DNA of 55,520 nucleotides, the filler included, from Isurus oxyrinchus (Eukaryota): assembly GCA_026770705.1 (NCBI GenBank). It is 3 parts of 3 records of this genome, joined end to end, with 100 filler letters (N's around TTAATTAATTAA, not from the genome) between each part and the next. Parts side by side here need not be neighbours in the genome. Positions count along the whole stretch, not along the records: positions 22,022 to 46,005 come from JANJGN010000385.1; 2 more parts are not named here. One strand, 5' to 3'. Positions 22,022-37,629 of this stretch are shown here, in pieces. Under the pieces are notes generated by a model. That model was not told the DNA's origin. It saw only the letters and a list, made by a program, of their open reading frames with translations, and did not search any database. Positions within the stretch are counted from its first letter, which is position 1. The number at the start of each line of letters is the position of its first letter. The position numbers and the translations under genes are program-made.

Positions 22022-22152
22022 CAGAACAAGTTCCAACAATGAGCTGTGGTTGGTGATTCCTCACGTTACATCCAGGGACACTGGAGACTATCAGTGTGTG
22101 GCAGAGAATGAACATGGAGCAGTGGAGGGATTCATAACCATCACTGTGGAAC
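22022..22152 (+). CDS. 3' part of a membrane-proximal Ig (C2/I-set) exon of a Siglec/CD22/MAG-like receptor; 5' end lost in the gap
   Basis: RTSSNNELWLVIPHVTSRDTGDYQCVAENEHGAVEGFITITVE with D-x-G-x-Y-x-C-x-A-x-N-x-x-G motif; donor C|GTGAGT, phase 1. Confidence 0.85.
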
Positions 22153-22189
22153 GTGAGTTACACAGAATTGAACATTCTGTTTTTATTAG

Positions 22190-23200
22190 CTCATGGGATA
22201 TGGGCATTGTTGACAAGGCCATCTGTAACTGCCCCTTGAGAAGGTGGTGGTGAGCTGCCTTCTTTAACTACTGCAGTCCATGTGGTGTAGGTACACCCAC
22301 TGTGCTGTTAGGGAGGGAGTTCCATGATTTTGTCCCAGCGACGGTGAAGGTACGGCCGATATATTTCCAAATCTCATGGAAGACCAACACCACAAGTTCG
22401 CCTCCAAGTCACACACCACACTGACTTGGAACTGTCTTGGTGGAAGAGGTTAAGGGTTTGGAAGGTGCTGTCGAAGGAGCCTTGGTGAGTTGCTGCAGCA
22501 CATTTTGTAGATGGTGCACACTGCGGCCATTGTGTGCCAGTGGTGGAGGGTATGAATGTTTATGCTGGTGGATGGGCTGTCGATCAAACAAGCTGCTCCT
22601 GGATGGTGTCGAGCTTCTTGAGTGTTGTTGGAGCTGCACTTATTCAGGCAATTGGAGATTATTCCATCACACTCCTGACTTGTGCCTTGTCCGATGGTGG
22701 ACAGGCTTTGGGGGGTCAGGAGTTGAATTACTCACCGCAGAGTTCCCAGCCTCTTACCCGCTCTTGTAGCCACATTATTTCCTGTTGCCGGGTTGTTGCC
22801 AGGGCCATTAGCCTTTGCTGTATCCAGTATCATCAGCTGATTCCTGATGTCACGTGGAGTCAATTGAATTGTCTGAAAGCTGACATCTGTGATGCTGGGA
22901 CCCTCTGGAGGAGGCCGAGATGGAGCATCCACTCAGCACTTCTGGCTGAACATGGTTGCCAATGCTTCAGCCTTGTCGTTTGCACTGATGTGCTGAGCTC
23001 CCCCATCGTTAAGGATGGGGATATTTGTGGAACATCCTCCTCCTGTTAGATCTTTAATTGTCCATCACCATTCATGACTGGATGTGGCAGGACTGCAGAG
23101 CTTAGATCTGACCCGTTGGTTGTGGGATCGCTTTGCTCTGTCTATAGCATGTTGTTTCCGCTGTTTGGCGTGTATGTATTCCTGTGTGTCACCTCAGCAG
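22190..23200 (-). mobile_element. Rearranged LINE fragments
   Basis: Reverse-strand LINE tail plus ORF2 pieces (LDTAKANGPGN) similar to 47830-49540. Confidence 0.75.
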
Positions 23201-23403
23201 CTTGGCACCTCTGTTATATGTGAATCCTCCTTATAGAAACCTGCATGTACATGGATATTATCAATAAATATTACATAGATAAATGTTATTTGTATAGACC
23301 TTTCATGCATAGACAATATCACTTCACAAGTTCAGAATTACTACATGTACATAGGGAACCATTCTCAAACTGTACCGGAGTCATTCATTGGCTGATTTTA
23401 CAG

Positions 23404-23500
23404 GGCGAGATTCCAATGAATGGAAAGCAGGATTGCTTGGAGCTGGAATCTGTTTGAGTGTTGGACTGAGTGGATTCTTCATCTTCAAGTGTGTGAGAAA
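23404..23500 (+). CDS. Transmembrane exon A of the Siglec-like receptor (uncharged core)
   Basis: Not in the ORF track. attttacAG|GG CGA...AGA AA|GTAAGT, phase 1-2, in frame with the exon ending at 22152. (R)RDSNEWKAGLLGAGICLSVGLSGFFIFKCVR(K). Confidence 0.8.
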
Positions 23501-24204
23501 GTAAGTGTGAAGGTTTAATTGGTTGATTTCAAACATTTTTTCTTCAAACTTCTCTCCTTATAGAAAGAACTTGCATTTCTATAGCACCTTTCACAACCCA
23601 AAACCCTTCACAGCCCCTGAAGAGTTTTGATTTTCACATACTGTTTAACATCTCATCCAACACTCAATGTTTCACAACTCAGTCCTGTAACTGGCAGTGT
23701 TGACCCGCACCATAAGATACCTTGTGACCTCCTGAGGATGTGAAAGGTGCTATATAAATGAAAACTTTTCTTTTGTTAGTGAATGCAATCTCTTTCCTTT
23801 TTCCATGTTTCATTCACTCTCTCTTATCTCCACTAATGCTCTCCTTCTCATTCTCTCTCTCATTCACTCTCTCTCTTATCTCCACTAATGCTCTCCTTCT
23901 CATTCTCTCTCTCGTCCTCTTACACATTGTTCAGTATCTCACATTTTTAAGGAGCGCTGAGCAACATCTGCTCCTTCAGAAGATCCACCTCAACATCTGG
24001 AGTGAGCAGTGAATTGAAACTCGCTCACCAACAGCTCAGCTTTACACAGGAATCACGTCACAGAGTCAGGACACAAAGGGTTAACAGTTTGCTTACAACA
24101 CAACACTAAGGCCCTACGTTTCAGTGAAACGGTTTTCACAATTGTTCCCCAATTCCTGATTTGACTCACAGAGACACATCAACCCTTTCTCATTAAATAC
24201 ACAG

Positions 24205-24289
24205 AGGGAGCAGCACAGGAAGAGGTCATTCAGCCCAAGCAGAGCGTGTGGGCAGTTCCTCCCCAGGCGAGCAGTCGGACAGGTACTGG
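24205..24289 (+). CDS. Candidate juxtamembrane cytoplasmic exon (copy 1 of a 3-copy module; may instead be a 5'UTR-type exon)
   Basis: acacAG|A GGG AGC...TAC TGG|GTAAGT. Phase 2-0 bridges TM exon A to the phase-0 tyrosine exons. GSSTGRGHSAQAERVGSSSPGEQSDRYW; weak acceptor. Confidence 0.4.
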
Positions 24290-24479
24290 GTAAGTAACAG
24301 AACGATTGGAATTCACTTCCACCACCAACACCATCCTTTGTTGATGTTGTGACTTTATAAAGACAGATTCCAATGATTGATACCTTTGAAAGATTTCTAC
24401 TGATTATTGAGATCTGGGTGTGAGGCTTAGGTTTGTTGGACAGAACATCTTTCTGGTTAAATTATGCAGACAGGTTACA

Positions 24480-24730
24480 CACAGTCTACGATTATATTCC
24501 CTCGGGTCTAGAAGATTAAGGAGTGATCTAATTGAGGGGTTCAAACTGATTAAACACTCGATAGGGTCGATAGAGAGAAGCTATTCCCTCGGGTGGGGGT
24601 GGGTGGTGGGGGTCGGGTGGAGTCCAGAACAAGGGGGCTGGAACTTCAGATTGGAGCCAGGCCATTCAGGGGTGATGTCAGGAAGCACTTCTTCACACAA
24701 AGGGGAGTGGAAATCTGGAACTCTCTCCCC
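24480..24730 (+). mobile_element. CR1 LINE 3' fragment
   Basis: YSLGSRRLRSDLIE and RKHFFTQRGVEIWNSLP motifs. Confidence 0.8.
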
Positions 24731-24800
24731 AATAATCAAACCCAACACCGAATACACATCATTGTGATTGTCACTCTGTCCATTTCCATCTCTATTCCAG

Positions 24801-24890
24801 AAGAGAGGCGAGGGGAAAGCAGGAATCAAATCATACTACCGTGTTGATGAATATCGAGGTCCTCTTTATGAAAACTGTGAACGTGGTTGG
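24801..24890 (+). CDS. Duplicated cytoplasmic tyrosine-motif exon (paralog of 28131-28247); 3' end uncertain
   Basis: tctattccAG|AAG AGA GGC...; KRGEGKAGIKSYYRVDEYRGPLYENCE. Upstream intron homologous to that of the 28131 exon; no clear phase-0 donor found. Confidence 0.5.
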
Positions 24891-25039
24891 GCTTTGAGGA
24901 ATCAGTTGTGTCACACACCACAGGATCCCCAGCCTCTCAGCTGCTCCAGTAGCCTGGTTATTGATATGGCTGCTCCAGTCCTGTATCCGCAATGTTTTAT
25001 ACAGTCACTCCCAAACCCAACCAAACTCACACCCAACAC

Positions 25040-28032
25040 CATTCAGAATCAATAATCAAACCCCGATCAGAATCAATAATCAAACCCCGTTCAGAATCAA
25101 TAATCAAACCCCGTTCAGTATCAATAATCAAACCCCGTTCAGTATCAATAATCAAACCCCGTTCAGAATCAATAACCACAACCCGTTCAATATCAATAAT
25201 CAAACCCCGTTCAGAATCAATAATCAAACCCTGTTCAGTATCAATAATCAAACCCCGTTCAGTATCAATAATCAAACCCCATTCAGAATCAATAATCAAA
25301 CCCCGTTCAGAATCAATAATCAAACCCCGTTCAGTATCAATAATCAAACCCCGTTCAGTATCAATAATCAAACCCCGTTCAAAATCAATAATCAAACCCC
25401 ATTCAGGTTCAATAATCAAACATCGTTTAGAATCAATAATCAAACCCCATTCAGTATCAATAATCAAACCCCGTTCAGTATCAATAATCAAACCCCGTTC
25501 AGAATCAATAATCAAACATCATTCAGTATCAATAATCAAACCCCGTTCAGAATTAATAATCAAACCCCGTTCAGTATCAAAAATCAACCCCCTTTCAGAA
25601 TCAATAATCAAACACTGTTCAGAATCAATAATCAAACTCCGTTCAGGTTCAACAATCAAACATCGTTTAGAATCAATAATCAAACCCCGTTCAGAATCAA
25701 TAATCAAACCACGTTCAGAATTAATAATCAAACCCCGTTCAGTATCAATAATCAAACCCCATTCAGAATCAATAATCAAACACCATTCAGTATCAATAAT
25801 CAAACCCCGTTCAGAATTAATAATCAAACCCCGTTCAGAATCAATAATCAAACTCTGTTCAGTATCAATAATCAAACTCCGTTCAGGTTCAATAATCAAA
25901 CACCATTTAGAATCAATAATCAAACCCCGTTCAGTATCAATAATCAAACCCCGTTCAGAATCAATAATCAAACACCATTCAGTATCAATAATCAAACCCC
26001 GTTCAGAATTAATAATCAAACCCCGTTCGGAATCAATAATCAAACCCCGTTCAGTATCAATAATCAACCCCCTTTCAGAATCAGTAATCAAACACTGTTC
26101 AGAATCAATAATCAAACACCGTTCAGTATCAATAATCAAACTCCATTCAGATTCAATAATCAAACACCGTTTAGAATCTATAATCAAACCCCGTTCAGTA
26201 TCAATAATCAACCCCAGTTCAGAATCAATAATCAAACTCCATTCAGGTTCAATAATCAAACAACGTTTAGAATCAATAATCAAACACCATTTCGAATCAA
26301 TAATCAAACCCCGTTCAATGTCAATAATCAAACCCCGTTCAGTATCAATAATCAAACGCCGTTCAGAATCAATAATCAAACCCCGTTCAGTATCAATAAT
26401 CAAACGCCGTTCAGAATCAATAATCAAACCCCGTTCAGTATCAATAATCAAACCCCTTTCAGAATCAATAATCAAACCCCTTTCAGAATCAATAATCAAA
26501 CCCCATTCAGAATCCATAATCAAACCGCTTTCAGAATCCATAATCAAACCCCTTTCAGGATCAATATTCAAACCCTGTTCAGGATCAATAATCAAACCCC
26601 GTTCAGAACCCATAATCAAACCCCTTTCAGAATCAATAATCAAACCCCTTTCAGAATCAATAATCAAACCCCGTTCAGTATCAATAATCAAACCCCGTTC
26701 AGTATCAATAATCAAACCCCGTTCAGTATCAATAATCACACCCCGTTCAGTATCAATAATCAAACCCCGTTCAGAATCAATAATCAAACCCTGTTCAGGA
26801 TCAATAATCAAACCCCGTTCAGAATCAATAATCAAACCCCTTTCAGAATCCATAATCAAATCCCTTTCAGGATCAATAATCAAACCCCATTCAGAATCAA
26901 TAACCAAACCCTGTTCAGAATCAATAATCAAACCCCATTCAGGATCAATAATCAAACCCCGTTCAGGTTCAATAATCAAACACCGTTTAGAATCAATAAT
27001 CAAACCCCGTTCAGTATCAATAATCAAACCCCGTTCAGAATCAATAATCAAACACCATTCAGTATCAATAATCAAACCCTGTTCAGAATTAATAATCAAA
27101 CCCCGTTCGGAATCAATAATCAAACCCCGTTCAGTAACAATAATCAACCCCCTTTGAGAATCAGTAGTCAAACACTGTTCAGAATCAATAATCAAACACC
27201 GTTCAGTATCAATAATCAAACTCCATTCAGATTCAATAATCAAACACCGTTTAGAATCTATAATCAAACCCCGTTCAGTATCAATAATCAACCCCAGTTC
27301 AGAATCAATAATCAAACTCCATTCAGGTTCAATAATCAAACAACGTTTAGAATCAATAATCAAACACCTTTTAGAATCAATAATCAAACCCCGTTCAGTA
27401 TCAATAATCAAACGCCGTTCAGAATCAATAATCAAACCCCGTTCAGTATCAATAATCAAACCCCTTTCAGAATCAATAATCAAACCCCGTTCAGTATCAA
27501 TAATCAAACGCCGTTCAGAATCAATAATCAAACCCCGTTCAGTATCAATAATCAAACCCCTTTCAGAATCAATAATCAAACCCTGTTCAGGATCAATAAT
27601 CAAACCCAGTTCAGAATCCATAATCAAACCCCTTTCAGAATCAATAATCAAACCCCTTTCAGAATCAATAATCAAACCCCGTTCAGTATCAATAATCAAA
27701 CCCCGTTCAGTATCAATAATCACACCCCGTTCAGTATCAATAATCAAACCCCGTTCAGAATCAATAATCAAACCCCATTCAGAATCCATAATCATACCCC
27801 GTTCAGTATCAATAATCAAACCCCATTCAGAATCAATAATCAAACCCTGTTCAGAATCAATAATCAAACCCCTTTCAGGATCAATAATCAAACCCCATTC
27901 AGAATCAATAATCAAACCCTGTTCAGAATCAATAATCAAACCCCTTTCAGGATCAATAATCAAACCCAGTTCAGTATCAATAATCAAACCCCGTTCAGAA
28001 TCAATAATCAAACCCCGTTCAGTATCAATAAT
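25040..28032 (+). repeat. 24-bp minisatellite (TTCAGAATCAATAATCAAACCCCG)n, ~125 copies
   Basis: 24-nt register kept across the whole array; substitutions only, no visible indels. Confidence 0.97.
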
Positions 28033-28130
28033 TAATGTCTCTATTGTGGATGGAATTTTTGATTTGGATCAATAATACTAAACACTGATCACTCTGATTG
28101 TCACTCTGATCATTTCTGTTTCTATTACAG

Positions 28131-28247
28131 AAGAAAGATGAGAAGGATCTGGAAATGAAATCTAACCGCGGAGTCAATCCTGATACAGATGATGATCTTT
28201 ACGCAAACTGTGAATTTGCCAAGGATTCTGTTTATGGGAATTTATAA
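28131..28247 (+). CDS. Terminal cytoplasmic exon with ITIM of the Siglec-like receptor
   Basis: Not in the ORF track. tctattacAG|AAG AAA GAT...; KKDEKDLEMKSNRGVNPDTDDDLYANCEFAKDSVYGNL*. SVYGNL fits (S/I/V/L)xYxx(L/I/V) and sits at the C-terminus. Confidence 0.75.
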   Translation, partial: KKDEKDLEMKSNRGVNPDTDDDLYANCEFAKDSVYGNL

Positions 28248-29364
28248 ACTGAGCAAGAATGAGACACACACAGTGTGGGGAGAATACAGAACGGGAGAAT
28301 CATTCAAAACTCCAATTTACCTTCCTAATATCAACAGGAACTCACTCCCAGGAAATAGATTTAAACCTCTTGTTACAATCTGATGGAATTTCTTCGGAAT
28401 GATCTATCCTGGATGATTGTCTGTGGGTTTCCATTCGAACATCCTCCTTCAGATTTGTCCCTCACTGTTGGAAACATCCTTCTCTCCAATCTGATTGTAA
28501 ATGTTTTTAGATATCGTTCGATGATGTACCAGGACAGAACGGACAAATTCAATCCCGTGTCCATGATTATGAGTTAATTTTCATTCTGTTATTCACCTTC
28601 CTGTCTGTCAGTGTTTAGAATATTCATCAGCCAGTGTAGACTTCAGGAAATGCAGCATCGGTGGATAATTGGAGCAGAGGAGATTGTTAAAATTTACTCA
28701 CCATTTTGTAGTCAAAAGTATTTTCAGAAATATATTTGGATTTTACACTTCATCGTTAAACAGCGAAACGAACAACAACCTGGGAAACAGGGAAGCAATT
28801 TGATTGGAGATTTGAGAAATTCTCTGCAGCTCAGAGGATAACAGATGTGCTACAGTGCCACCACTGGTGGGAGTTCATCAGTACAACGTGACATGTTTAC
28901 ATTGATATAGCCAATGAACATAGGAAATTATGATGTGAAAATTTGGTTGCAGGTTTACCTTCTTCAATATGTCATGGATGGATGAGACAGCTTTGATAAC
29001 AGAATGAGACAGAGCTGCAATAAACCACCATTTTAGTCTTTCACACTTGGAGAGTACAATTAGCATCCATCCTGAAGGCTGAGTGGATGGGTGGACTGTG
29101 CGATGTGTTACAGATTACAGAGACCAACATCCTTGATCCTGTTTCCGCTCTGTGTTTGATGAGATGCTTGGATCAAAGATTGGGAAAATAAATAATCCTC
29201 CTGCATTGATCTGTATCTGGTCTCTCCCTCTATCAGTGTCCTGAGGACAGAATTGGGTTCCATGTCCAAAATCAGACACATGCTTTGACTGCCCATTGAA
29301 TCGGAACAGGAGGAGGTCATTCAGCCCCCTCGAACCTGCTACACAGGAACAAGAGGGCACCTGA

Positions 29365-29575
29365 TACAAAAACAGAAATGCTGGAGACTGAGTAGGTCTG
29401 GCAGCATCTGTGCAGAGATAAACAGAATTAACATTTCGAGTCCGTATGACCCTTCTTCAGAGTCTCAAAGCAAAAACTCTGTTTCTCTCTCCACAGCTGC
29501 TGCCAGACCTGCTGAGTTAATGCAGCATTTTCTGATTTTATTTAGATTTACAGCGTCTGCAGTATTTATTTTTAA
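29365..29575. mobile_element. Inverted pair of Penelope-type terminal sequences
   Basis: AATGCTGG..GGTCTGGCAGCATCTGTG followed by its reverse complement CACAGCTGCTGCCAGACCTGCTGAG..CAGCATT; similar to 30310-30410. Confidence 0.6.
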
Positions 29576-29579
29576 TGAG

Positions 29580-31870
29580 AGGAGGACATTCAGCAGCTCA
29601 AGCCTGTTACACAGGAACAGGAGGAGGCCCCATTCAGCCCCCTCAAGCCTGTTACACAGGAACAGGAGGAGGCCCATTCGGCCCCTCAAGCCTGTTACAC
29701 AGGAACAGGAGGAGGCCCATTCAGCCCCTTGAGCCTGTTACACAGGAACAGGAGGAGGCCCATTCAGGCCCTCGAGCTTGTTACACAGGAACAGGAGGAG
29801 GCCCATTCAGCCCCTCGAGCCTGTTACACAGGAACAGGAGGAGGCCCATTCAGGCCCTCGAGCTTGTTACACAGGAACAGGAGGAGGCCCATTCAGCCCC
29901 ATGAGCCTGTTACACAGGAACAGGAGGAGGCCCATTCAGCCCCTCGAGCCTGTTGCACAGGAACAGGAGGAGGCCCATTCAGCCACTCAATCCTGTTACA
30001 TGAGGACAGGAGAAGGCCCATCAGCCTCATGAGCCTATTACACAGGAACAGGAAGAGGACATTCAGTCCCTCAACACCCTTCCACAGGAACAGGAGAGAC
30101 TCTCAGCCCCTCGAGCCTGTTACACAGGAACAGGAGGAGGCCCATTCAGCCCCCTCGAGCCTGTTACACAGGAACAGGAGGAGGCCCATTCTGTCCCCTC
30201 GAGCCTGTTACACAGGAAGAGGAGGCCCATTCAGCCTCCACAAGCTTGTTACACAGGAACATTAGGGGCTCCATTCAGCCACTCAAGCCTGCTCCACATG
30301 AACGGGAACAAACACAAAAATAGCTGGAAAAACTCAGCAGGTCTGACAGGATCTGCGGAGAGGAACACACTTGACGTTTTGGGTCTGTATGACTCTTCAT
30401 CAGAACTAAGGGAATCGAGAAATGAGGTGACGTTTTAGCTGGTAGAGGGGGTGGGACAGGTAGAGCTGGATTGTGGGCCAGTGATAGGTGGAGGTAAAGA
30501 AGAGGTTGCCAAAGATGTGATAGACAAAAGGACAAAGGGGTGTTGACGGTGGTGATATTATCTGAGGAATGTGCTAATGGGGACATTAAGGGTAGAAAGC
30601 AGGACGAGCAAGAGACAGATAGTCCTAGTGGGGGTGGGGTGGGGGGAAAGGATTGAAATAGGCTAAAAGGTAGAGATACAACAACAGATGTAAAACATTT
30701 AAAAATAATGGAAATAGGTGGGAAAAGAAAAATATATAAATAAAATAAATATTAAAAATGATAAATTAATGGAAAAGGGAGATTGGAAAGGGGGTGGGGA
30801 TGGAGGAGAGAGTTCATGATCTGAAATTGTTGAACTCAATATTCAGTCGGGAAGGCTGTAAAGTGCCAGGTCGGAAGATGAGGTGCTGTTCCTCCAGTTT
30901 GTGTTGGGCTTCACTGGAACAATGCAGCAGGCCAAGGACGGACATGTGGGCATGAGAGCAGGGTGGGGTGTTAAAATGGCAAGCGACAGGGAGGTCTGGG
31001 TCATGCTTGCGGACAGACCAAAGGTGTTCATCAGAGCGATCACCCAGTCTGTGTTTGGTCTGTCCCATGTAGAGGAGACCACATTGGGAGCAGTGAAGGC
31101 AGTAGATTAAATTGAGGGAAGTGCAAGTGAAATGCTGCTTCCAATGATGCTCCTAATGTACTCGAGCCTGGTACACAGGAACTGGGGAAGGCCAATTCAG
31201 CCCCTTTAGCCTTTTACACAGGAACAGGAGGAGGCCCACTCAGCCCCTCGAGCCTATAACACAGGAACAGGAGGAGGCCCACTCAGCCCCATGAGCCTGT
31301 TACACAGGAACAGGAGGAGGCCCACTCAGCCCCCTCAAGCTTGTTACACAGGAACAGGAGGAGGCCCACTCAGCCCCATGAGCCTGGTACACAGTGAGAG
31401 AAGGAGGCCATTCAGCCCCCCTGAGCCTGTTGCACAGGAAAAGGAGGAGGCCCATTCAGCCCCTCGAGCTTATTACCCAGGGATAGGAGGACGCCCATTC
31501 AGCCCCTCGAGCCTGTTACACAGGAACAGGAGGAGGCCAATCCGGACACTCGAGCCTGTTACACAAGGACAGGGGGAGGTCCATTCAGCCCCTCGAGCCT
31601 GTTACACAGGAACAGGAGGAGGCACATTCAGCCCTGCCAAAAACTGTTACACAGGAACAGGAGGAGGCATAATCAGCCACACAATCATGTCACACTGCGA
31701 CAGGAGGATACCCATTTAGCGCCCTTGAGCCTGTTACACAGGAATAGGAGGAGGCCATTCAGCCCCATCAAGCCCATTGCACAGGAACAGGTGGGGGCTC
31801 ATTCAGCCCCTCGAGCCTGTTACACAGGAACAGGAGGAGGCCCATTCAGCCCCTCGAGCTTGTTGCATGT
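29580..31870 (+). repeat. ~43-bp minisatellite (CCTGTTACACAGGAACAGGAGGAGGCCCATTCAGCCCCTCGAG)n, split by a Penelope insertion
   Basis: Two blocks, ~29580-30300 and ~31165-31870. Confidence 0.92.
30310..31140 (-). mobile_element. 5'-truncated Penelope-like element (GIY-YIG endonuclease end + 3' region)
   Basis: MGQTKHRLGDRSDEH...PVACHFN...LEEQHLIFRPGTLQPSRLNIEF resembles the C-terminus of Penelope GIY-YIG domains. Confidence 0.85.
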
Positions 31871-32194
31871 GAACAGTCAATGGCCCTTCAACCACATTCT
31901 TGGCACGCAAAGGGTTAACAGTTTTCTAACAGTGCGAGGCAAAGAGCTGCTTTCTCACTTGGTACCAAGCACTTCCTCATTTTGACTCACAGTGACACAT
32001 CCACCCTTTCTAATTAAACACAAATAGGGAGCAGCACAGGAAGAGGTCATTCAGCCCAAGCAGAGCGTGTGGGCAGTTCCTCTCCAGGCGAGCAGTCGGA
32101 CAGGTCCTGGGTAAGTAACGGAATGATTGGAAATCATGGGGGCAGTTCTGAGAGCTCCTAATCCATTGTCCTGTCTTGTAAATCAGCACCTTAA

Positions 32195-32425
32195 TACTGA
32201 CCCTTCAACAGTGCGGCACTCCCTCAGTACTGATCCTCCAACAGTGCAGCACTCCCTGATTAATGTCCCTCTGACAGTGCAGCACTGCCTCAGTACTCAC
32301 CCTCCAATAGTGGAGATCTCCCTCAGTACTGACCTTACAATAGTGCAACACATGCTCTGTAATGACCATCCGACAGTGCAGCACTCCCTCAGTACTGACC
32401 CTCCGACAGTGCAGCACTCTCTCAG
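32195..32425 (+). repeat. 33-bp minisatellite (ACAGTGCAGCACTCCCTCAGTACTGACCCTCCG)n
   Basis: About 7 copies; same unit as 35430-37415. Confidence 0.9.
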
Positions 32426-33867
32426 AATATGGAAATTCTAAAGTCTATTACAGACATTCAGATGCATAGAGGCTCTCACAGATACTCTCTGCCTCTCCAA
32501 CTCTCTCTCTCCCTTTAAGAAGCTTCCTGAAAGCTAACCCTTCGAACAATCACCGGTCCCAAATCCTCCTTATCTGAATCTGTGTGACTTTGTTTGTGTA
32601 TCAGAGAAAAAGAGAGATGTGGAGAGGTTTAGGAAGAGAATTCCTGCTGGCGAAAAGCTTACATCATTTACTCACCATTCCAGTGCACATATTTCCCAGT
32701 ATGTCCAATGCCTCTGTTTATAATGATGACTGCCTATGTAAACGTCACGCTGTAGTTACAGTCTCCCACCAGTGGTGGCATTGTAGCCCTTAATCCTTGT
32801 GTTTCCCAGCTTTTCAAGCAACTCCACTTCCCAGTTTGCTACACAAGCTGTGAGTTCATCAGAATTCAATTATTTCTCAAACGGTAGATTTGATGTCATT
32901 TTATTGAAAACTTCCTCAGTACCTCCCTGAAGGGTTTACACTCTCTGGGAAGCAGGAATAGGCTGGATGTTGGGGAGTTCATCTTTTCCCAGAGAGTAGT
33001 GATCCTTGGGAATGTGCTGTCAGTGGGTGTGGTAGTTCCTGTTTCTCTGTCACCTTCAAGAGGGATCTGGAGTGGTTACTGACTGGGGGAGAGATCATGG
33101 AAGCGGAGAATGGTACAGCACAGGAGGAGGCCATTCAGCCCATTGAGGCTGTGCCAGGTCTTTCAATGTTCTATCCAATCAGATCCACTAACCACCACTC
33201 CACTTTACCCCATCTTCCTCCTTCAAGTGTTTATCCAATTTCCCTTTTGAAAGTTCCTATTGAATCTGCTTCCACCGCCCTTTCAGGCAGCACCTTCCAG
33301 ATCACAACAACTCGCTCTGTCAAAACAAATTCTCCTCATCTCCCCCTCCAGTTGGTCAATCTGTGTCCCTCTGGTTACCGACCCTCCTGCCCCTTAAATA
33401 CATCGATACTGTTCACCTCAACCACTCCCTGTGGGAGTGAGTTCCACATTCTCCCCTCTCTCTGGGTAAAGATTGGAACTGTTTATTAAGCGGGGGGTGT
33501 AAGTCCGTGGGGGAGTCCATCTCGATTCTGCCCGATTCGCACACGCATCCGAGATGGATTTCCACCCTGCACTAAACGTTTCCAGAATTTTCTACAGCAC
33601 AATCCTGTACACAGCGATGGAGAGAAACATTGGACAGGGAGTCCAACAGCACAATGATCCATTCTCACCAATGTTCCACGCTAAGGGGAAAGTTCCGATT
33701 GTCCACTCTTAGAGTGTTTACAATGAAAACATTCATTCCACATTGAATCCCAGTGGATGGGTCAATATTACAGCAAATGTTGCAGTGATATGAAGCTTGA
33801 TTGTTCAGCCAGAGTGAGAGATTGAAAGCGGAGAGTCAGTGATGATTTCTTTCTGTGTGTTCTCTAG

Positions 33868-34007
33868 ACAGTGGAGGAGAGATTCTGCACGTGTTCCTGA
33901 TCCTGGGAATACGAGCTGTGATATTCCTTGTGGCTGTGGTTATCACTATCGCTGGAGTCTGTGTCTGGGAGAGACAAACAGTGAAAGGAAGTCGACAGAC
34001 TGTTTGA
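33868..34007 (+). CDS. Transmembrane exon B: activating-type TM (intramembrane Arg) with short tail and stop
   Basis: This frame is not in the ORF track. ttctttctgtgtgttctctAG|AC AGT GGA..., phase 1. SGGEILHVFLILGIRAVIFLVAVVITIAGVCVWERQTVKGSRQTV*. Confidence 0.75.
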
Positions 34008-34129
34008 AGCTTTGTACAGCAACAATCTGGTCAGTCAGTGCGGACAAATAACGTGTGATGTTGTGTTAAGTTGTAATGAAACTGGTCAGTGTCCTGGTTA
34101 GAATCACCTTCGTATCAGAGAGGCATTCC

Positions 34130-34710
34130 AGCACAGTAGGAGACCATTCAGCCCATTAAGTCCATGCTGTCTCTCTGTAGAGCAATCCAGTCAGTCCCAT
34201 TCCCCCTCTCTATCCCTGTATCTCTACAAGTGTCCATCCAATTTCCTTTTGAAATCATTCATCGTCTCCGCTTCCACCATCCTCGTAGGCAGCGAGTTCC
34301 AGCTCATTACCACTCGCTGTGTAAAAAAGTTCCTCCTCACATCCCCCTCTGTCCAAAACCTTCAATCTGTGTCCCCCAGTCCTTGTCCCATCAGCTAATG
34401 GCAACAGCTTCTCTTTGTCTACCGTATGTAAACCCATCATCATCTTGTACACCTCGATCAGATCCCCCCTCAATCTCCTTTGCTCCAAGGAGAACAACCC
34501 CAGCTTCTCCAACCCAACCTTGTAGCTAAAATCCCTCATCCCTGGACCCATTCTGCTCAATCTCCTCCCCACCCTCTCAAGGACCCTCACTTCATTCCCA
34601 AAGTGAGGAGACCAGAACTGGACACAATAGTCTAGTTGTGACCTAACCAGAGCTTTATAAATGTTCAGCATAACCTCCCTGTGTTTGTACTCAATGCCTC
34701 GATTTATGAA
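34130..34710 (-). mobile_element. CR1 LINE 3' end
   Basis: YKALVRSQLDYCVQFWSPH, LGLFSLEQRRLRGDLIEVYKMM. Confidence 0.9.
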
Positions 34711-35429
34711 AAGCTTATTCTTTCCATCAGCACAAACAGCAATTTCCAAGCGGACTCCCATCAGCAGACAGAGTGCAATGAAACATCGGCATGCCTGCTT
34801 CTTAATGTACGGAGAGAAACCTGGAACGAGAGATTCTCCTTCTTCTCCTCAGCAAGCTGAAACTTTTCCTTATACCTGGTGCTCCCCAGTCCTGCTGTGT
34901 GGACACATCATACCACGGCATTGTCTGGCTGTGTGCAGCCAACATGGTCGAATAGGAATGAACAGAAATGTGACATTGCTAAACTCTGTTCTCTGATTGG
35001 AATGAGCTTTCTGAATGCTGCACCTTTTTCATGCTGCGATAGATTGTAAGAAGCATTTGGGTTATGAATAAAATTACATTGATTAACACAAGTGATTAAA
35101 ATGTTCAGGCTTTTCTGTAGATACTTATGGATTAAAATTCTTATTTTGCTGCCAGATTCTTGGCTCAAAGACATTATTTCATGTTGTCACTTTTTCCAGT
35201 CTGATGAATTCCTGTGGCCATCTGTATAATGGAAATTTTCAATGTAAACACGTCACATTGCAGCTGCACACTCCTGCCAGTGGTGGTGCCATTCCAAAAC
35301 TGTCTTGCTGCACCAACACAGTGAGAATTATTCTCGACATGTACATGATGTTGTTATTACACAGACATCAGGCGGAATCTTGGGCTGTGCCTAGAATGCA
35401 CTTAGGACATTGCAGACCACGCACAGAAC

Positions 35430-37415
35430 TGACAGTGCAGCGTTTCCTCAATCCTGACCCTCGGTCAGTGCAGCGCTCCCTCATTACTGTCCCTCTGACA
35501 GTGCTGCACTACCTCATTATTGACCCTTTTCAAGTGCAGCACCCTGTCAGCACTGACCTTCTGACAGTGCAGCACACCCTCATGGCTGACAATCTGACAG
35601 TGCAGCACTCCCTCAGTACTCATCCACCCACAGTGCAGCACTCTCTCAGTACTGATCCTCTGACACTGTATCCCTCCCTCACTACTGACCTTCCGACAGT
35701 TCAGCACTCCCACGGTACACACCTTCTGACAGTGCAGCACTCCCTCATTACAGACTCTCTGACAGTGCAGCACTCCCACAGTGCTAACCCTCCCACAGCG
35801 CAGCCCTCTCTCAGTACTCACCCTCCCACAGTGCAGCACTCCCTCAGTACTCACCCTCCCTCGGTGCTGTTCGAGTTGATTCAATCAAGACTGGTGCCCA
35901 AAGAGGGAGGTTTCAATGCTAAATCATTGAAATCCGTGAAAATTATTTTTAGGCTTATGGGAACAAGACTTAGTTCCTCAAATCCTTTCTTTTGCAATAA
36001 CACACAGTACAAGAATTCTGTTTAAATAAATTCCAGTTAAACTTTGCCATGAAAGGATATCTCCTCACACTCCACTCTACCTCAGTACTAACCCTCCCAC
36101 AGTCCGGCCCCCCCTCAATACTGACCCTCTGACTGTGCGGAACTCACTCAGTACTGACCCTCCGACAGTGCAGCACTCCCACATTACTTACCCTCTGATA
36201 GTGCAGCGCTCCCTCATTACTGACCCTCTGACAGTGCAGCACTCCCTCATTACTGACCCTCTGACAGTGCAGCACTCCCTCATTTCCGACCCTCTGACAG
36301 TGCAGCACTCCCTCGGTACAGACGCACTGACAGTGCAGCACTCCCTCAGTACTCAGCTTCCCACAGTGCAGACATCCCTCTGTACTCAACTTCCCACAGT
36401 GCAGCACTCCCTCAATTCTCACCCTCCCACAGTGCAGCACTCTCTCAGTACTGACCCTCCCACAGTGCAGCCATCCCTCTGTACTCAACTTCCCACAGTG
36501 CAGCACTCCCTCAATTCTCACCCTCCCACAGTGCAGCCCTCCCTCTGTACACACCCTCCCACAGTGCAGCACTCCCTCAGTACTCACCTTCCCACAGTGC
36601 AGCACTCCCTCATTACTGATCCTCTGACAGTGCAGCACTCCCTCAGTACTCCCCCTCCCACAGTGCAGCACTCCCTCAGTACTCACCCTCCCACAGTGCT
36701 GTGCGAGTTGTTTCAATCAAGACTGGTGCACAAAGAGGGAGGTTTCAATGCTAAATCATTGAAATCGATGAAAATTATTTTTAGGCTTACGGGAACAAGA
36801 CATAGTTCCTCAAATCCTTTCTTTTGCAATAACACACAGTACAAGAATTCTGTTTAAATAAATTCCAGTTAAACTTTGCCATGAAAGGATATCTTCTCAC
36901 ACTCCGCTCTACCTCAGCACTAACCCTCCCACAGTCTGGCACCCCCTCAATACTGACCCTCCGACTGTGCGGAACTCACTCAGTGCAGACAATCTGACAG
37001 TGCAGCACTCCCTCATTACTGACCCTGTGACAGTGCAGCACTCCCTCAGTACTGAACCTCCGACAGTGCAGCACTCCCTCAGTACTGACCATCTGACAGT
37101 GCAGCACTCCCTCAGTACTGAACCTCTGACCGTGCAGCACTCCCTCATTACTGACCCTCTGACAGTGCAGCACTCCCACATTACTGACCCTCTGACAGTG
37201 CAGCACTCCCTCATTACTGACCCTCTGACAGTGCAGCAATCCCACATTACTGACCCTCTGACAGTGCAGCACTCCCTCATTACTGACCTTCTGACAGTGC
37301 AGCACTCTCCCATTACTGACCCTCTGATAGTGCAGCACTCCCACATTACTGACCCTCACACAGTGCAGCACTCCCACAGTAGATTCCCGCTGACAGTGCA
37401 GCATTCCCTCCGTAA
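35430..37415 (+). repeat. Three blocks of the 33-bp minisatellite separated by a duplicated ~220-bp spacer
   Basis: Spacer ~35864-36080 nearly identical to ~36696-36912 (offset 832). Confidence 0.9.
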
Positions 37416-37629
37416 TGATAACAGGGATCGTTGAAATGTATCATAAGGCCAGAGACCTGTATTGGGGACTCTATCGCCTGAGTTTCAGCCTCAGTGGTGA
37501 GGGGGAGGAGTCTAATCCCACGGAGCCAATGGAGAAGCTTCATGACTACAGCTGCCCAAATATGAGCTGACAGATCACACATGGTAAACGTTTTGCTGAG
37601 AGCACAAAACATCCTCGATCTTCTCACTG

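Follow-up and report, generated by a model that had tools for sequence, protein, structure and literature searches.

Within a window of Isurus oxyrinchus DNA (55,520 nucleotides (nt), filler included; assembly GCA_026770705.1), a Siglec-like gene with a tyrosine-bearing cytoplasmic end, here called gene A, is followed by a solitary exon, TM-B, which encodes a transmembrane (TM) helix with an arginine inside it and a short tail. The explanation that we favour, and to which we give about an even chance, is that TM-B remains as the 3' end of an activating paralog that was truncated, and is not a regulated alternative end of gene A. This paralog would have lost its leader, V-set and C2-set exons by rearrangement, with a relic exon (X2) and a 33-bp satellite marking the scar, such that X2 and TM-B may represent the two ends of an activating gene unit without its middle. 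The original prediction, made from the same DNA, had offered two readings, namely that a single gene flips its signalling polarity by alternative last-exon choice, or that TM-B is the orphan of a deleted paralog; the latter is favoured by the separate genes of relatives and by the local rearrangement described below, whereas the former found no support.

The genomic DNA analysed spans positions 22022-46005 (JANJGN010000385.1), and all features given below lie on the + strand unless stated otherwise; exons were searched one by one by reference, each by itself and not as part of a joined (spliced) protein model. Public sequencing runs containing positions 33640-34128 were considered as well, and the contigs of four of them were aligned to 31870-35425 (these are always written as "run" here, to keep their labels apart from exon names). 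Judged by the homology of its exons, this DNA is a slice of a multigene Siglec cluster (CD33-related-like) of a lamniform shark. Its order would be the 3' half of gene A, then the stand-alone TM-B with its own intron and terminal exon in the 3' untranslated region (3'UTR), and finally the 5' half of a decaying activating-type V-V-C2 gene.

TM-B, its owners in other sharks and the interval upstream

TM-B occupies 33868-34029, begins in phase 1 behind the acceptor tctctag, and translates as SGGEILHVFLILGIRAVIFLVAVVITIAGVCVWERQTVKGSRQTV*, that is SGGEILHVFLILGIRAVIFLVAVVITIAGVCVW followed by the 12-amino-acid (aa) tail ERQTVKGSRQTV, with the stop codon at 34005-34007 and then 22 nt of 3'UTR. As had been claimed from the first reading and as translation confirms, the helix holds an arginine (..FLILGIRAVIFLV..) and the tail before the stop is free of tyrosine, a combination that characterizes adaptor-coupled (DAP12/FcR-gamma type) receptors. 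By this motif, TM-B may be considered an activating end and would couple to an adaptor of the DAP12/FcR-gamma type. It is not a chance open reading frame (ORF), as HMMER gave an E-value of 2e-13 and 42 of its 45 residues are identical to Carcharodon exons; the three differing positions (IQ to FL, and G to R) leave a Phe-Leu and an Arg, within HVFLILG..WERQ, that are private to this copy. Furthermore, TM-B is the last coding exon, yet not the last exon: a GT..AG intron of 701 nt (34030-34730; joint 34028>34730, cut +1, in runs X2 and X7) interrupts its 3'UTR, and a terminal 3'UTR exon (34731-~35119) follows, to which record 30 of run X7 aligns (34730-35119) and which holds AATAAA at 35067-35072 and ATTAAA at 35095-35100.

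A HMMER search with the 45-aa TM-B sequence against 1.84 billion proteins returned eight shark proteins, all ending in the TM-B module (E 2e-13 to 5e-4) and named in their source as Siglec-12, Siglec-13, CD33-like, sialoadhesin-like, CD22-like or SLAM-family; with the last two immunoglobulin (Ig) domains of one of these as query, 71 elasmobranch Siglec-like proteins were obtained. In Carcharodon, TM-B belongs to ten gene models on six contigs, three of which models share a 646-kb contig with the ortholog of gene A, a setting alike to ours in that both kinds of gene stand together. All ten have the structure leader-V(-V)-C2-TM-B, with the junction ..TVQ|D|SGGEILHVIQILGIRAVIFLVAVVITIAGVCVWEGQTVKGSRQTV (..TVQ|D|SGGEILHV). 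The likeness between the two species extends over 87-97% for the exons of gene A, 93% for TM-B and 85-87% for V2, a V-set exon of the downstream gene (Carcharodon Siglec models XP_041037222-225 and XP_041037231/232/236 and others, "Siglec-12/13/7", "CD33-like"). However, each Carcharodon TM-B has its own V(-V)-C2, whereas here none lies within 11.8 kb upstream. Models ending in TM-B also occur in S. canicula, S. torazame, C. punctatum, H. ocellatum, R. typus and M. asterias, and in every annotated relative found the TM-B-type exon ends a separate gene of its own. The models with an immunoreceptor tyrosine-based inhibitory motif (ITIM), P0024 and P0111, are in turn separate from the ten Carcharodon TM-B models, with the same split in other sharks. 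P0111 carries a V-V-C2 ectodomain of the same kind on an X-cyt1-ITIM tail (exons described below), which, together with TM-B models in separate genes, marks the family as classical paired receptors, each end having its own gene. The occurrence of TM-B in separate genes of paralogs had been named beforehand as an observation that would speak against a single-gene switch, and it is what the annotated relatives have.

The claim that no leader or Ig exon lies between 28247 and 33868 held as well. Within 28248-33867, no Ig or leader exon was found by stop-to-stop ORFs, by Pfam or by tblastn with seven family proteins: the ORFs of at least 50 aa belong to repeats or transposons, Pfam recognized no Ig domain in the ten longest ORFs outside the satellites, and the seven proteins (covering leader, V, C2, I-set and both end types) gave nothing better than E ~1 except for a copy of exon X at 32027-32110. 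This copy, X2, is a relic of an exon also present in gene A, with short flanks (31951-32136; exon part 32026-32110, donor gt at 32111; 89-92% identical by self-BLAST to the copies X1 and X3). It lies 1.76 kb upstream of TM-B and breaks off 26 nt past its donor, and the 33-bp satellite sets in at 32195. The relic and the satellites between gene A and TM-B argue that the interval has been rearranged, and a deletion that stripped TM-B of its ectodomain could have taken place here. Two candidates in the same interval were rejected: a degenerate Ig exon just 5' of TM-B proved spurious, as the tblastn extension to 33735 crosses five stop codons, and a coding transcript leading from X2 to TM-B would have incompatible frames and neither ATG nor signal peptide, the upstream partner in the spliced contig described below being other than X2.

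The 33-bp satellite (unit ..CAGTGCAGCACTCCCTCAGTACTGACCCT..) stands on both sides of the TM-B segment, at 32195-32425 and 35429-37410, and its summed contig depth of ~540,000 in run X16 makes it a very abundant genomic repeat. Two arrays of a 43-bp satellite (29579-30307 and 31161-31864) flank a Penelope-like fragment (30817-31152, - strand), the ORF of which has a weak GIY-YIG-like match (Pfam E 0.16). The solitary state of TM-B could also be an assembly artefact, in which a collapse or mis-join within a satellite array removed V-C2 exons that really precede it. The contig is short and its edge cuts through an Ig exon of a repeated kind, five satellite arrays lie within it, with the 33-bp unit extremely abundant in reads, and an extra A behind 34911 in all four runs, probably a one-base assembly error or a private variant, points to at least small errors. 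However, a 3-kb satellite was assembled through, suggesting long reads, and contigs of run X16 from organism B, which are probably DNA, cover 32440-34055 with small holes only and in the same arrangement as the window. We consider such an artefact decidedly unlikely.

Gene A and a proposed choice between two ends

Gene A comprises, in this DNA, its last Ig exon, the TM exon TM-A, exon X1, an optional exon cyt1 and a final coding exon ending in SVYGNL*. The membrane-proximal Ig exon, of I-set type, is cut by the contig edge, and only its 3' end is present (22022-22152; donor gtgagt). Reading and translation bear out the earlier statement that it ends in phase 1 at 22152: positions 22023-22151 translate as RTSSNNELWLVIPHVTSRDTGDYQCVAENEHGAVEGFITITVE, with one spare base at 22152. 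This fragment matches the Pfam I-set family (E 8.6e-7) and agrees at 100% identity with Ig units that recur in Cetorhinus P0012 and Carcharodon P0089/P0087. As these 43 aa are all of the gene A ectodomain on this contig, its V-set lying outside, the label "Siglec-like" for gene A rests on homology to annotated shark Siglec models. The exons of gene A are indeed homologous to shark RefSeq models named Siglec or MAG-like, these names being automatic; compared with the Carcharodon carcharias "myelin-associated glycoprotein-like" isoforms X1-X4 (XP_041037222-225), identity reaches 97% for TM-A, 93% for X1, 89% for cyt1 and 87% for the last exon.

TM-A (23404-23500; phase 1 in, phase 2 out; 97% identical to all four isoforms) translates as RDSNEWKAGLLGAGICLSVGLSGFFIFKCVR, and its core AGLLGAGICLSVGLSGFFIF carries no charge. 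The path from TM-A to SVYGNL* had been described correctly as to the uncharged core and the ending, but it needs one more exon, since the reading frame is otherwise lost. This is X1 (24205-24289), an 85-nt cytoplasmic exon reading KGSSTGRGHSAQAERVGSSSPGEQSDRYW (phase 2 in, phase 0 out; donor gtaagt), which is 93% identical to P0024/P0080 at residues 538-565. It is conserved as a coding exon in many shark Siglec models, which rules out a mere repeat or a 5'UTR copy. The second cytoplasmic exon, cyt1 (24801-24905), is only optional; it reads KRGEGKAGIKSYYRVDEYRGPLYENCERGWALRNQ, ending ..GPLYENCERGWALRNQ, and is 89% identical to its Carcharodon counterpart. The Carcharodon isoforms X1, X3 and X4 contain cyt1 and isoform X2 does not; by comparison with these isoforms, exon X1 is a real coding exon and cyt1 a cassette exon. 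One contig of run X2 that aligns to the X2 copy continues beyond it on both sides, with ..TTCAAGTGTGTGAGAAA (the end of TM-A) in front and AAGAGAGGCGAGG (the start of cyt1) behind, and so shows splicing of TM-A to exon X to cyt1 in RNA. Here, the donor of cyt1 (24906-24907) is TT and not GT, and the exon is therefore probably skipped or read through. Its inclusion would lead on to a stop within a 24-bp satellite and yield a tail without SVYGNL. This satellite, of ~125 copies (25035-28032, without strand; Tandem Repeats Finder), fills much of the intron preceding the last coding exon.

The last coding exon of gene A (28131-28247) reads KKDEKDLEMKSNRGVNPDTDDDLYANCEFAKDSVYGNL, ending ..DDDLYANCEFAKDSVYGNL, and is 87-89% identical to the tails of Carcharodon P0080/P0111; the 3'UTR extends to an AATAAA at 29019-29024. 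When the tail was compared with (S/I/V/L)xYxx(I/V/L), the C-terminal SVYGNL was the only tyrosine motif that fits, as DLYANC and PLYENC miss the ITIM consensus with D or P at position -2 and C at +3. Both conserved tail tyrosines of gene A stand in a YxN context, which is a context for Grb2-type SH2 binding. Inhibitory signalling by gene A would follow from these motifs, on which its label is based.

Two in-frame phase-1 TM exons, TM-A at 23404 and TM-B at 33868, do lie downstream of the Ig exon, just as predicted. In a single-gene polarity switch, donor 22152 would choose between them, giving one ectodomain either a tyrosine-motif tail or an arginine anchor. That one shark Siglec gene makes tyrosine-tail and adaptor-coupled forms of the same ectodomain in this way, via two 3' exon sets 10 kb apart, appears to us improbable. 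The junction 22152>33868 would read ...ACTGTGGAAC|ACAGTGGAGG (partner ...GGATTCATAACCATCACTGTGGAAC, TM-B side ACAGTGGAGGAG); the phases are compatible, with a junction codon C|AC for His, no other Ig exon lies between 22152 and TM-B, and cross-gene splicing is modelled within the cluster (Cetorhinus P0062: TM-A, X, next leader, V). However, four exons and the poly(A) site at 29019 would need to be bypassed by such a splice, and an ending in TM-B is absent from all four Carcharodon isoforms of the gene A ortholog (0/4) and from all three of Cetorhinus maximus (0/3).

Splicing of a near-identical TM-B in RNA-type contigs

The runs behave as RNA, with GT..AG joints, and in them a near-identical TM-B is spliced at its acceptor, has its 701-nt intron removed 22 nt past the stop, and ends near the two poly(A) signals. 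Record 30 of run X7, an 850-nt contig, aligns to 33866-34028 and 34730-35119, while its 296 upstream letters fit nothing in 31870-33865; its TM-B is ~99% identical to the window (7 mismatches and one gap in 554 nt). Exon depth exceeded that of the upstream intron 7-fold in run X2 and 13-fold in run X1, and in run X7 the intron depth was zero, with a share of sampled words (0.27) as expected from the exon alone. As the alignment of the run X7 contig starts at 33866, two bases 5' of the exon, its partner appears to have AG as its last two bases, which would make the junction codon GAC (Asp). This Asp matches all Carcharodon V-C2 genes, whereas the Ig exon at 22152 ends in AC and would give His. 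The part of the contig upstream of TM-B counts 298 nt, against 297 nt for the Carcharodon C2 exon (our own count).

From which locus this RNA originates is another matter. The divergence of the contigs from the window is 1.3-3.7%, at 33507 and 33638 the variants in run X1 are not those in run X2 even though both derive from the same sample, and run X16 of organism B (low, even depth; probably DNA, its kind being unlabelled) has window-like as well as variant letters at several of these sites. Several near-identical copies of TM-B thus exist, and the spliced contigs cannot be assigned to this locus. Given that ten or more near-identical TM-B exons are expected, intact paralogs would be the simplest source of the spliced RNA. 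The single-gene switch can invoke that a near-identical TM-B is spliced to a partner more than 2 kb upstream. However, the junction 22152>33868 was not seen among the listed contigs aligned to 31870-35425, the partner of the spliced contig seems to end in AG and not in AC, and the many TM-B paralogs suffice to explain the RNA. We regard the switch as unlikely on these grounds, too.

Several observations nevertheless weigh against TM-B being a remnant. It is fully intact here, with acceptor, ORF, donor, 3' exon and poly(A) signals, and two short contigs of run X2 (records 21 and 24, on 34000-34100 and 34825-34974) are identical to the window, from which exact matches this very copy may be transcribed. 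If it is also spliced, its partner lies more than 2 kb upstream and, with no Ig exon between, would either belong to gene A or lie further 5' than the contig reaches. Moreover, the start at 33866, from which the AG ending of the partner is read, is a weak clue, as the aligned piece has one mismatch at an unlocated site. Models of C. punctatum (P0003) and S. torazame (P0002) include long activating forms, with an I-set exon joined to an exon like TM-B; the I-set-type exon is the same as that of gene A, a point which also favours the switch. Finally, all Ig exons of the family are of phase 1-1, and any of them could join TM-B in frame.

The intact state of TM-B would also be accommodated by nested or overlapping genes, in which an intact activating gene has its leader, V and C2 exons beyond the contig start and houses the 3' half of gene A in its last intron, or in which the first V/C2 exons of gene A are spliced to TM-B. 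The contig begins inside gene A, with the DNA further 5' outside the contig, and the spliced partner resembles a C2 exon of ~297 nt ending in AG, both of which suit this arrangement. However, an intron of more than 11.8 kb holding a full terminal exon set and a poly(A) site would be needed, the ortholog of gene A in Carcharodon has a first C2 exon with the ending ..SVK|Y, which would place T, not G, at the junction, and no such isoform is annotated in the Carcharodon or Cetorhinus relatives. We judge nested genes to be very unlikely, and retain the truncated activating paralog as the best explanation for TM-B.

Known paired receptors and the downstream Siglec gene

Innate immunity of vertebrates repeatedly makes use of receptors paired as activating and inhibitory forms, and the origin of the activating partners is known mostly from mammals. 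The lamniform Siglec cluster holds both kinds, and a discrete cassette exon, strongly conserved, forms its activating end. When copies of the TM-B module from Siglec-like, CD22-like, pIgR-like and SLAM-like receptors (eight shark species) are aligned, identity is 55-93%; the core ILGIRA, including the arginine, is invariant, each of the 14 cassette copies from these 8 species retaining the arginine, and in every aligned case the module directly follows an Ig exon and is the last coding exon. The cassette looks like a shuffled exon module. It spans lamniform, carcharhiniform and orectolobiform sharks (P0001-P0009, P0079, P0096-P0112), and its presence across four receptor families and three shark orders suggests that exon shuffling has been one way in which cartilaginous fish acquired activating receptors.

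The mammalian paired CD33-related Siglecs (Siglec-5/14, Siglec-11/16) are alike in that near-identical sialic-acid-binding ectodomains carry either a tyrosine tail or a basic TM with a short tail. They, too, are side-by-side genes of a cluster, as the two forms in sharks are likewise annotated as separate genes, and the V-set of the shark neighbour gene keeps the sialic-acid arginine. In contrast, sharks have for the activating end a separate cassette exon of high conservation, which CD22-like, SLAM-like and pIgR-like receptors carry as well, and the tail tyrosines are of YxN type (LYANC, VYGNL), whereas the inhibitory tails of mammalian Siglecs bear the pair LxYxxL/TEYxEV. No literature was found on shark Siglec clusters or their adaptors.

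A change of signalling outcome by 3' exon splicing is exemplified by NKp44 (NCR2), which has splice isoforms with or without a cytoplasmic ITIM (PMC5371597). All NKp44 isoforms, however, share the same lysine-bearing helix and DAP12 coupling, the tail alone being changed, whereas the switch proposed for the shark gene would swap the helix as well. If true, such a one-gene switch would show paired receptors before they became separate genes, or after they ceased to be, with the portable TM-B cassette having supplied activating partners to several families of shark Ig receptors, and would be notable; it is not supported, and the arrangement as it stands would be an ordinary by-product of a fast-evolving, rearranging cluster.

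Downstream of TM-B, the next Siglec gene has a leader exon (38185-38266; ATG at 38227, MIGKSYFLLSLLE, phase 1 out), recognized by tblastn with P0102/P0109/P0087. Its first V-set exon, V1 (43550-43927), matches the Pfam V-set (4e-13) and Ig_CD22 (3e-10) families. The best matches of V1 among solved structures are sialoadhesin, Siglec-7, -8, -5, MAG and CD33, all with the arginine aligned; its motif YFFRI aligns with YNFRF of sialoadhesin, which contains the sialic-acid arginine. By these alignments, the V domain of the downstream gene is a true Siglec V-set with the sialic-acid arginine. The donor of V1 is AT instead of GT (ATAAGT vs GTAAGT in V2). The second V-set exon, V2 (44991-45282), was recognized by self-BLAST to V1 and by Pfam; it has an intact donor gtaagt and is 85-87% identical to the V domains of Carcharodon Siglecs ending in TM-B, but its 5' third is replaced by a reverse-transcriptase fragment of a long interspersed nuclear element (LINE; ~44140-44980). 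With the V1 donor altered and V2 truncated, this activating-type gene looks damaged, and together with the TT donor of cyt1 three decayed exons lie within the same 24 kb.

Three copies of exon X and its flanks are present (24134-24454, 31951-32136 and 37621-37941; 89-94% identity by self-BLAST). The third block, X3 (37621-37941; exon part 37692-37776, 94% identical to X1), precedes the leader exon of the next gene by 408 nt, and an X-like exon joined to a leader exon also opens P0053 and P0087, two models of Carcharodon; X3 is hence probably a 5' non-coding exon of that gene. In P0062 of Cetorhinus, TM-A, X and the leader and V exons of the next gene are strung together out of frame. The distribution of exon X points to a recycled exon serving as 5' exon, or to read-through splicing between neighbouring genes.

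Finally, a conserved element of ~60 nt, ATGTAAAC(A)CGTCAC...CTCCCACCAGTGGTGG, is present three times, at 32737-32780 (+), 35245-35288 (+) and 28856-28900 (-). The copies stand 1.1 kb 5' of TM-B, where the contig cover of run X2 starts, ~130 nt past the end of the TM-B transcript, and inverted within the 3'UTR of gene A. The element combines a forkhead-like TGTAAACA with a near-palindrome CCACCAGTGGTGG, and CCAGTGGTGG has 4 occurrences vs 0.06 expected.

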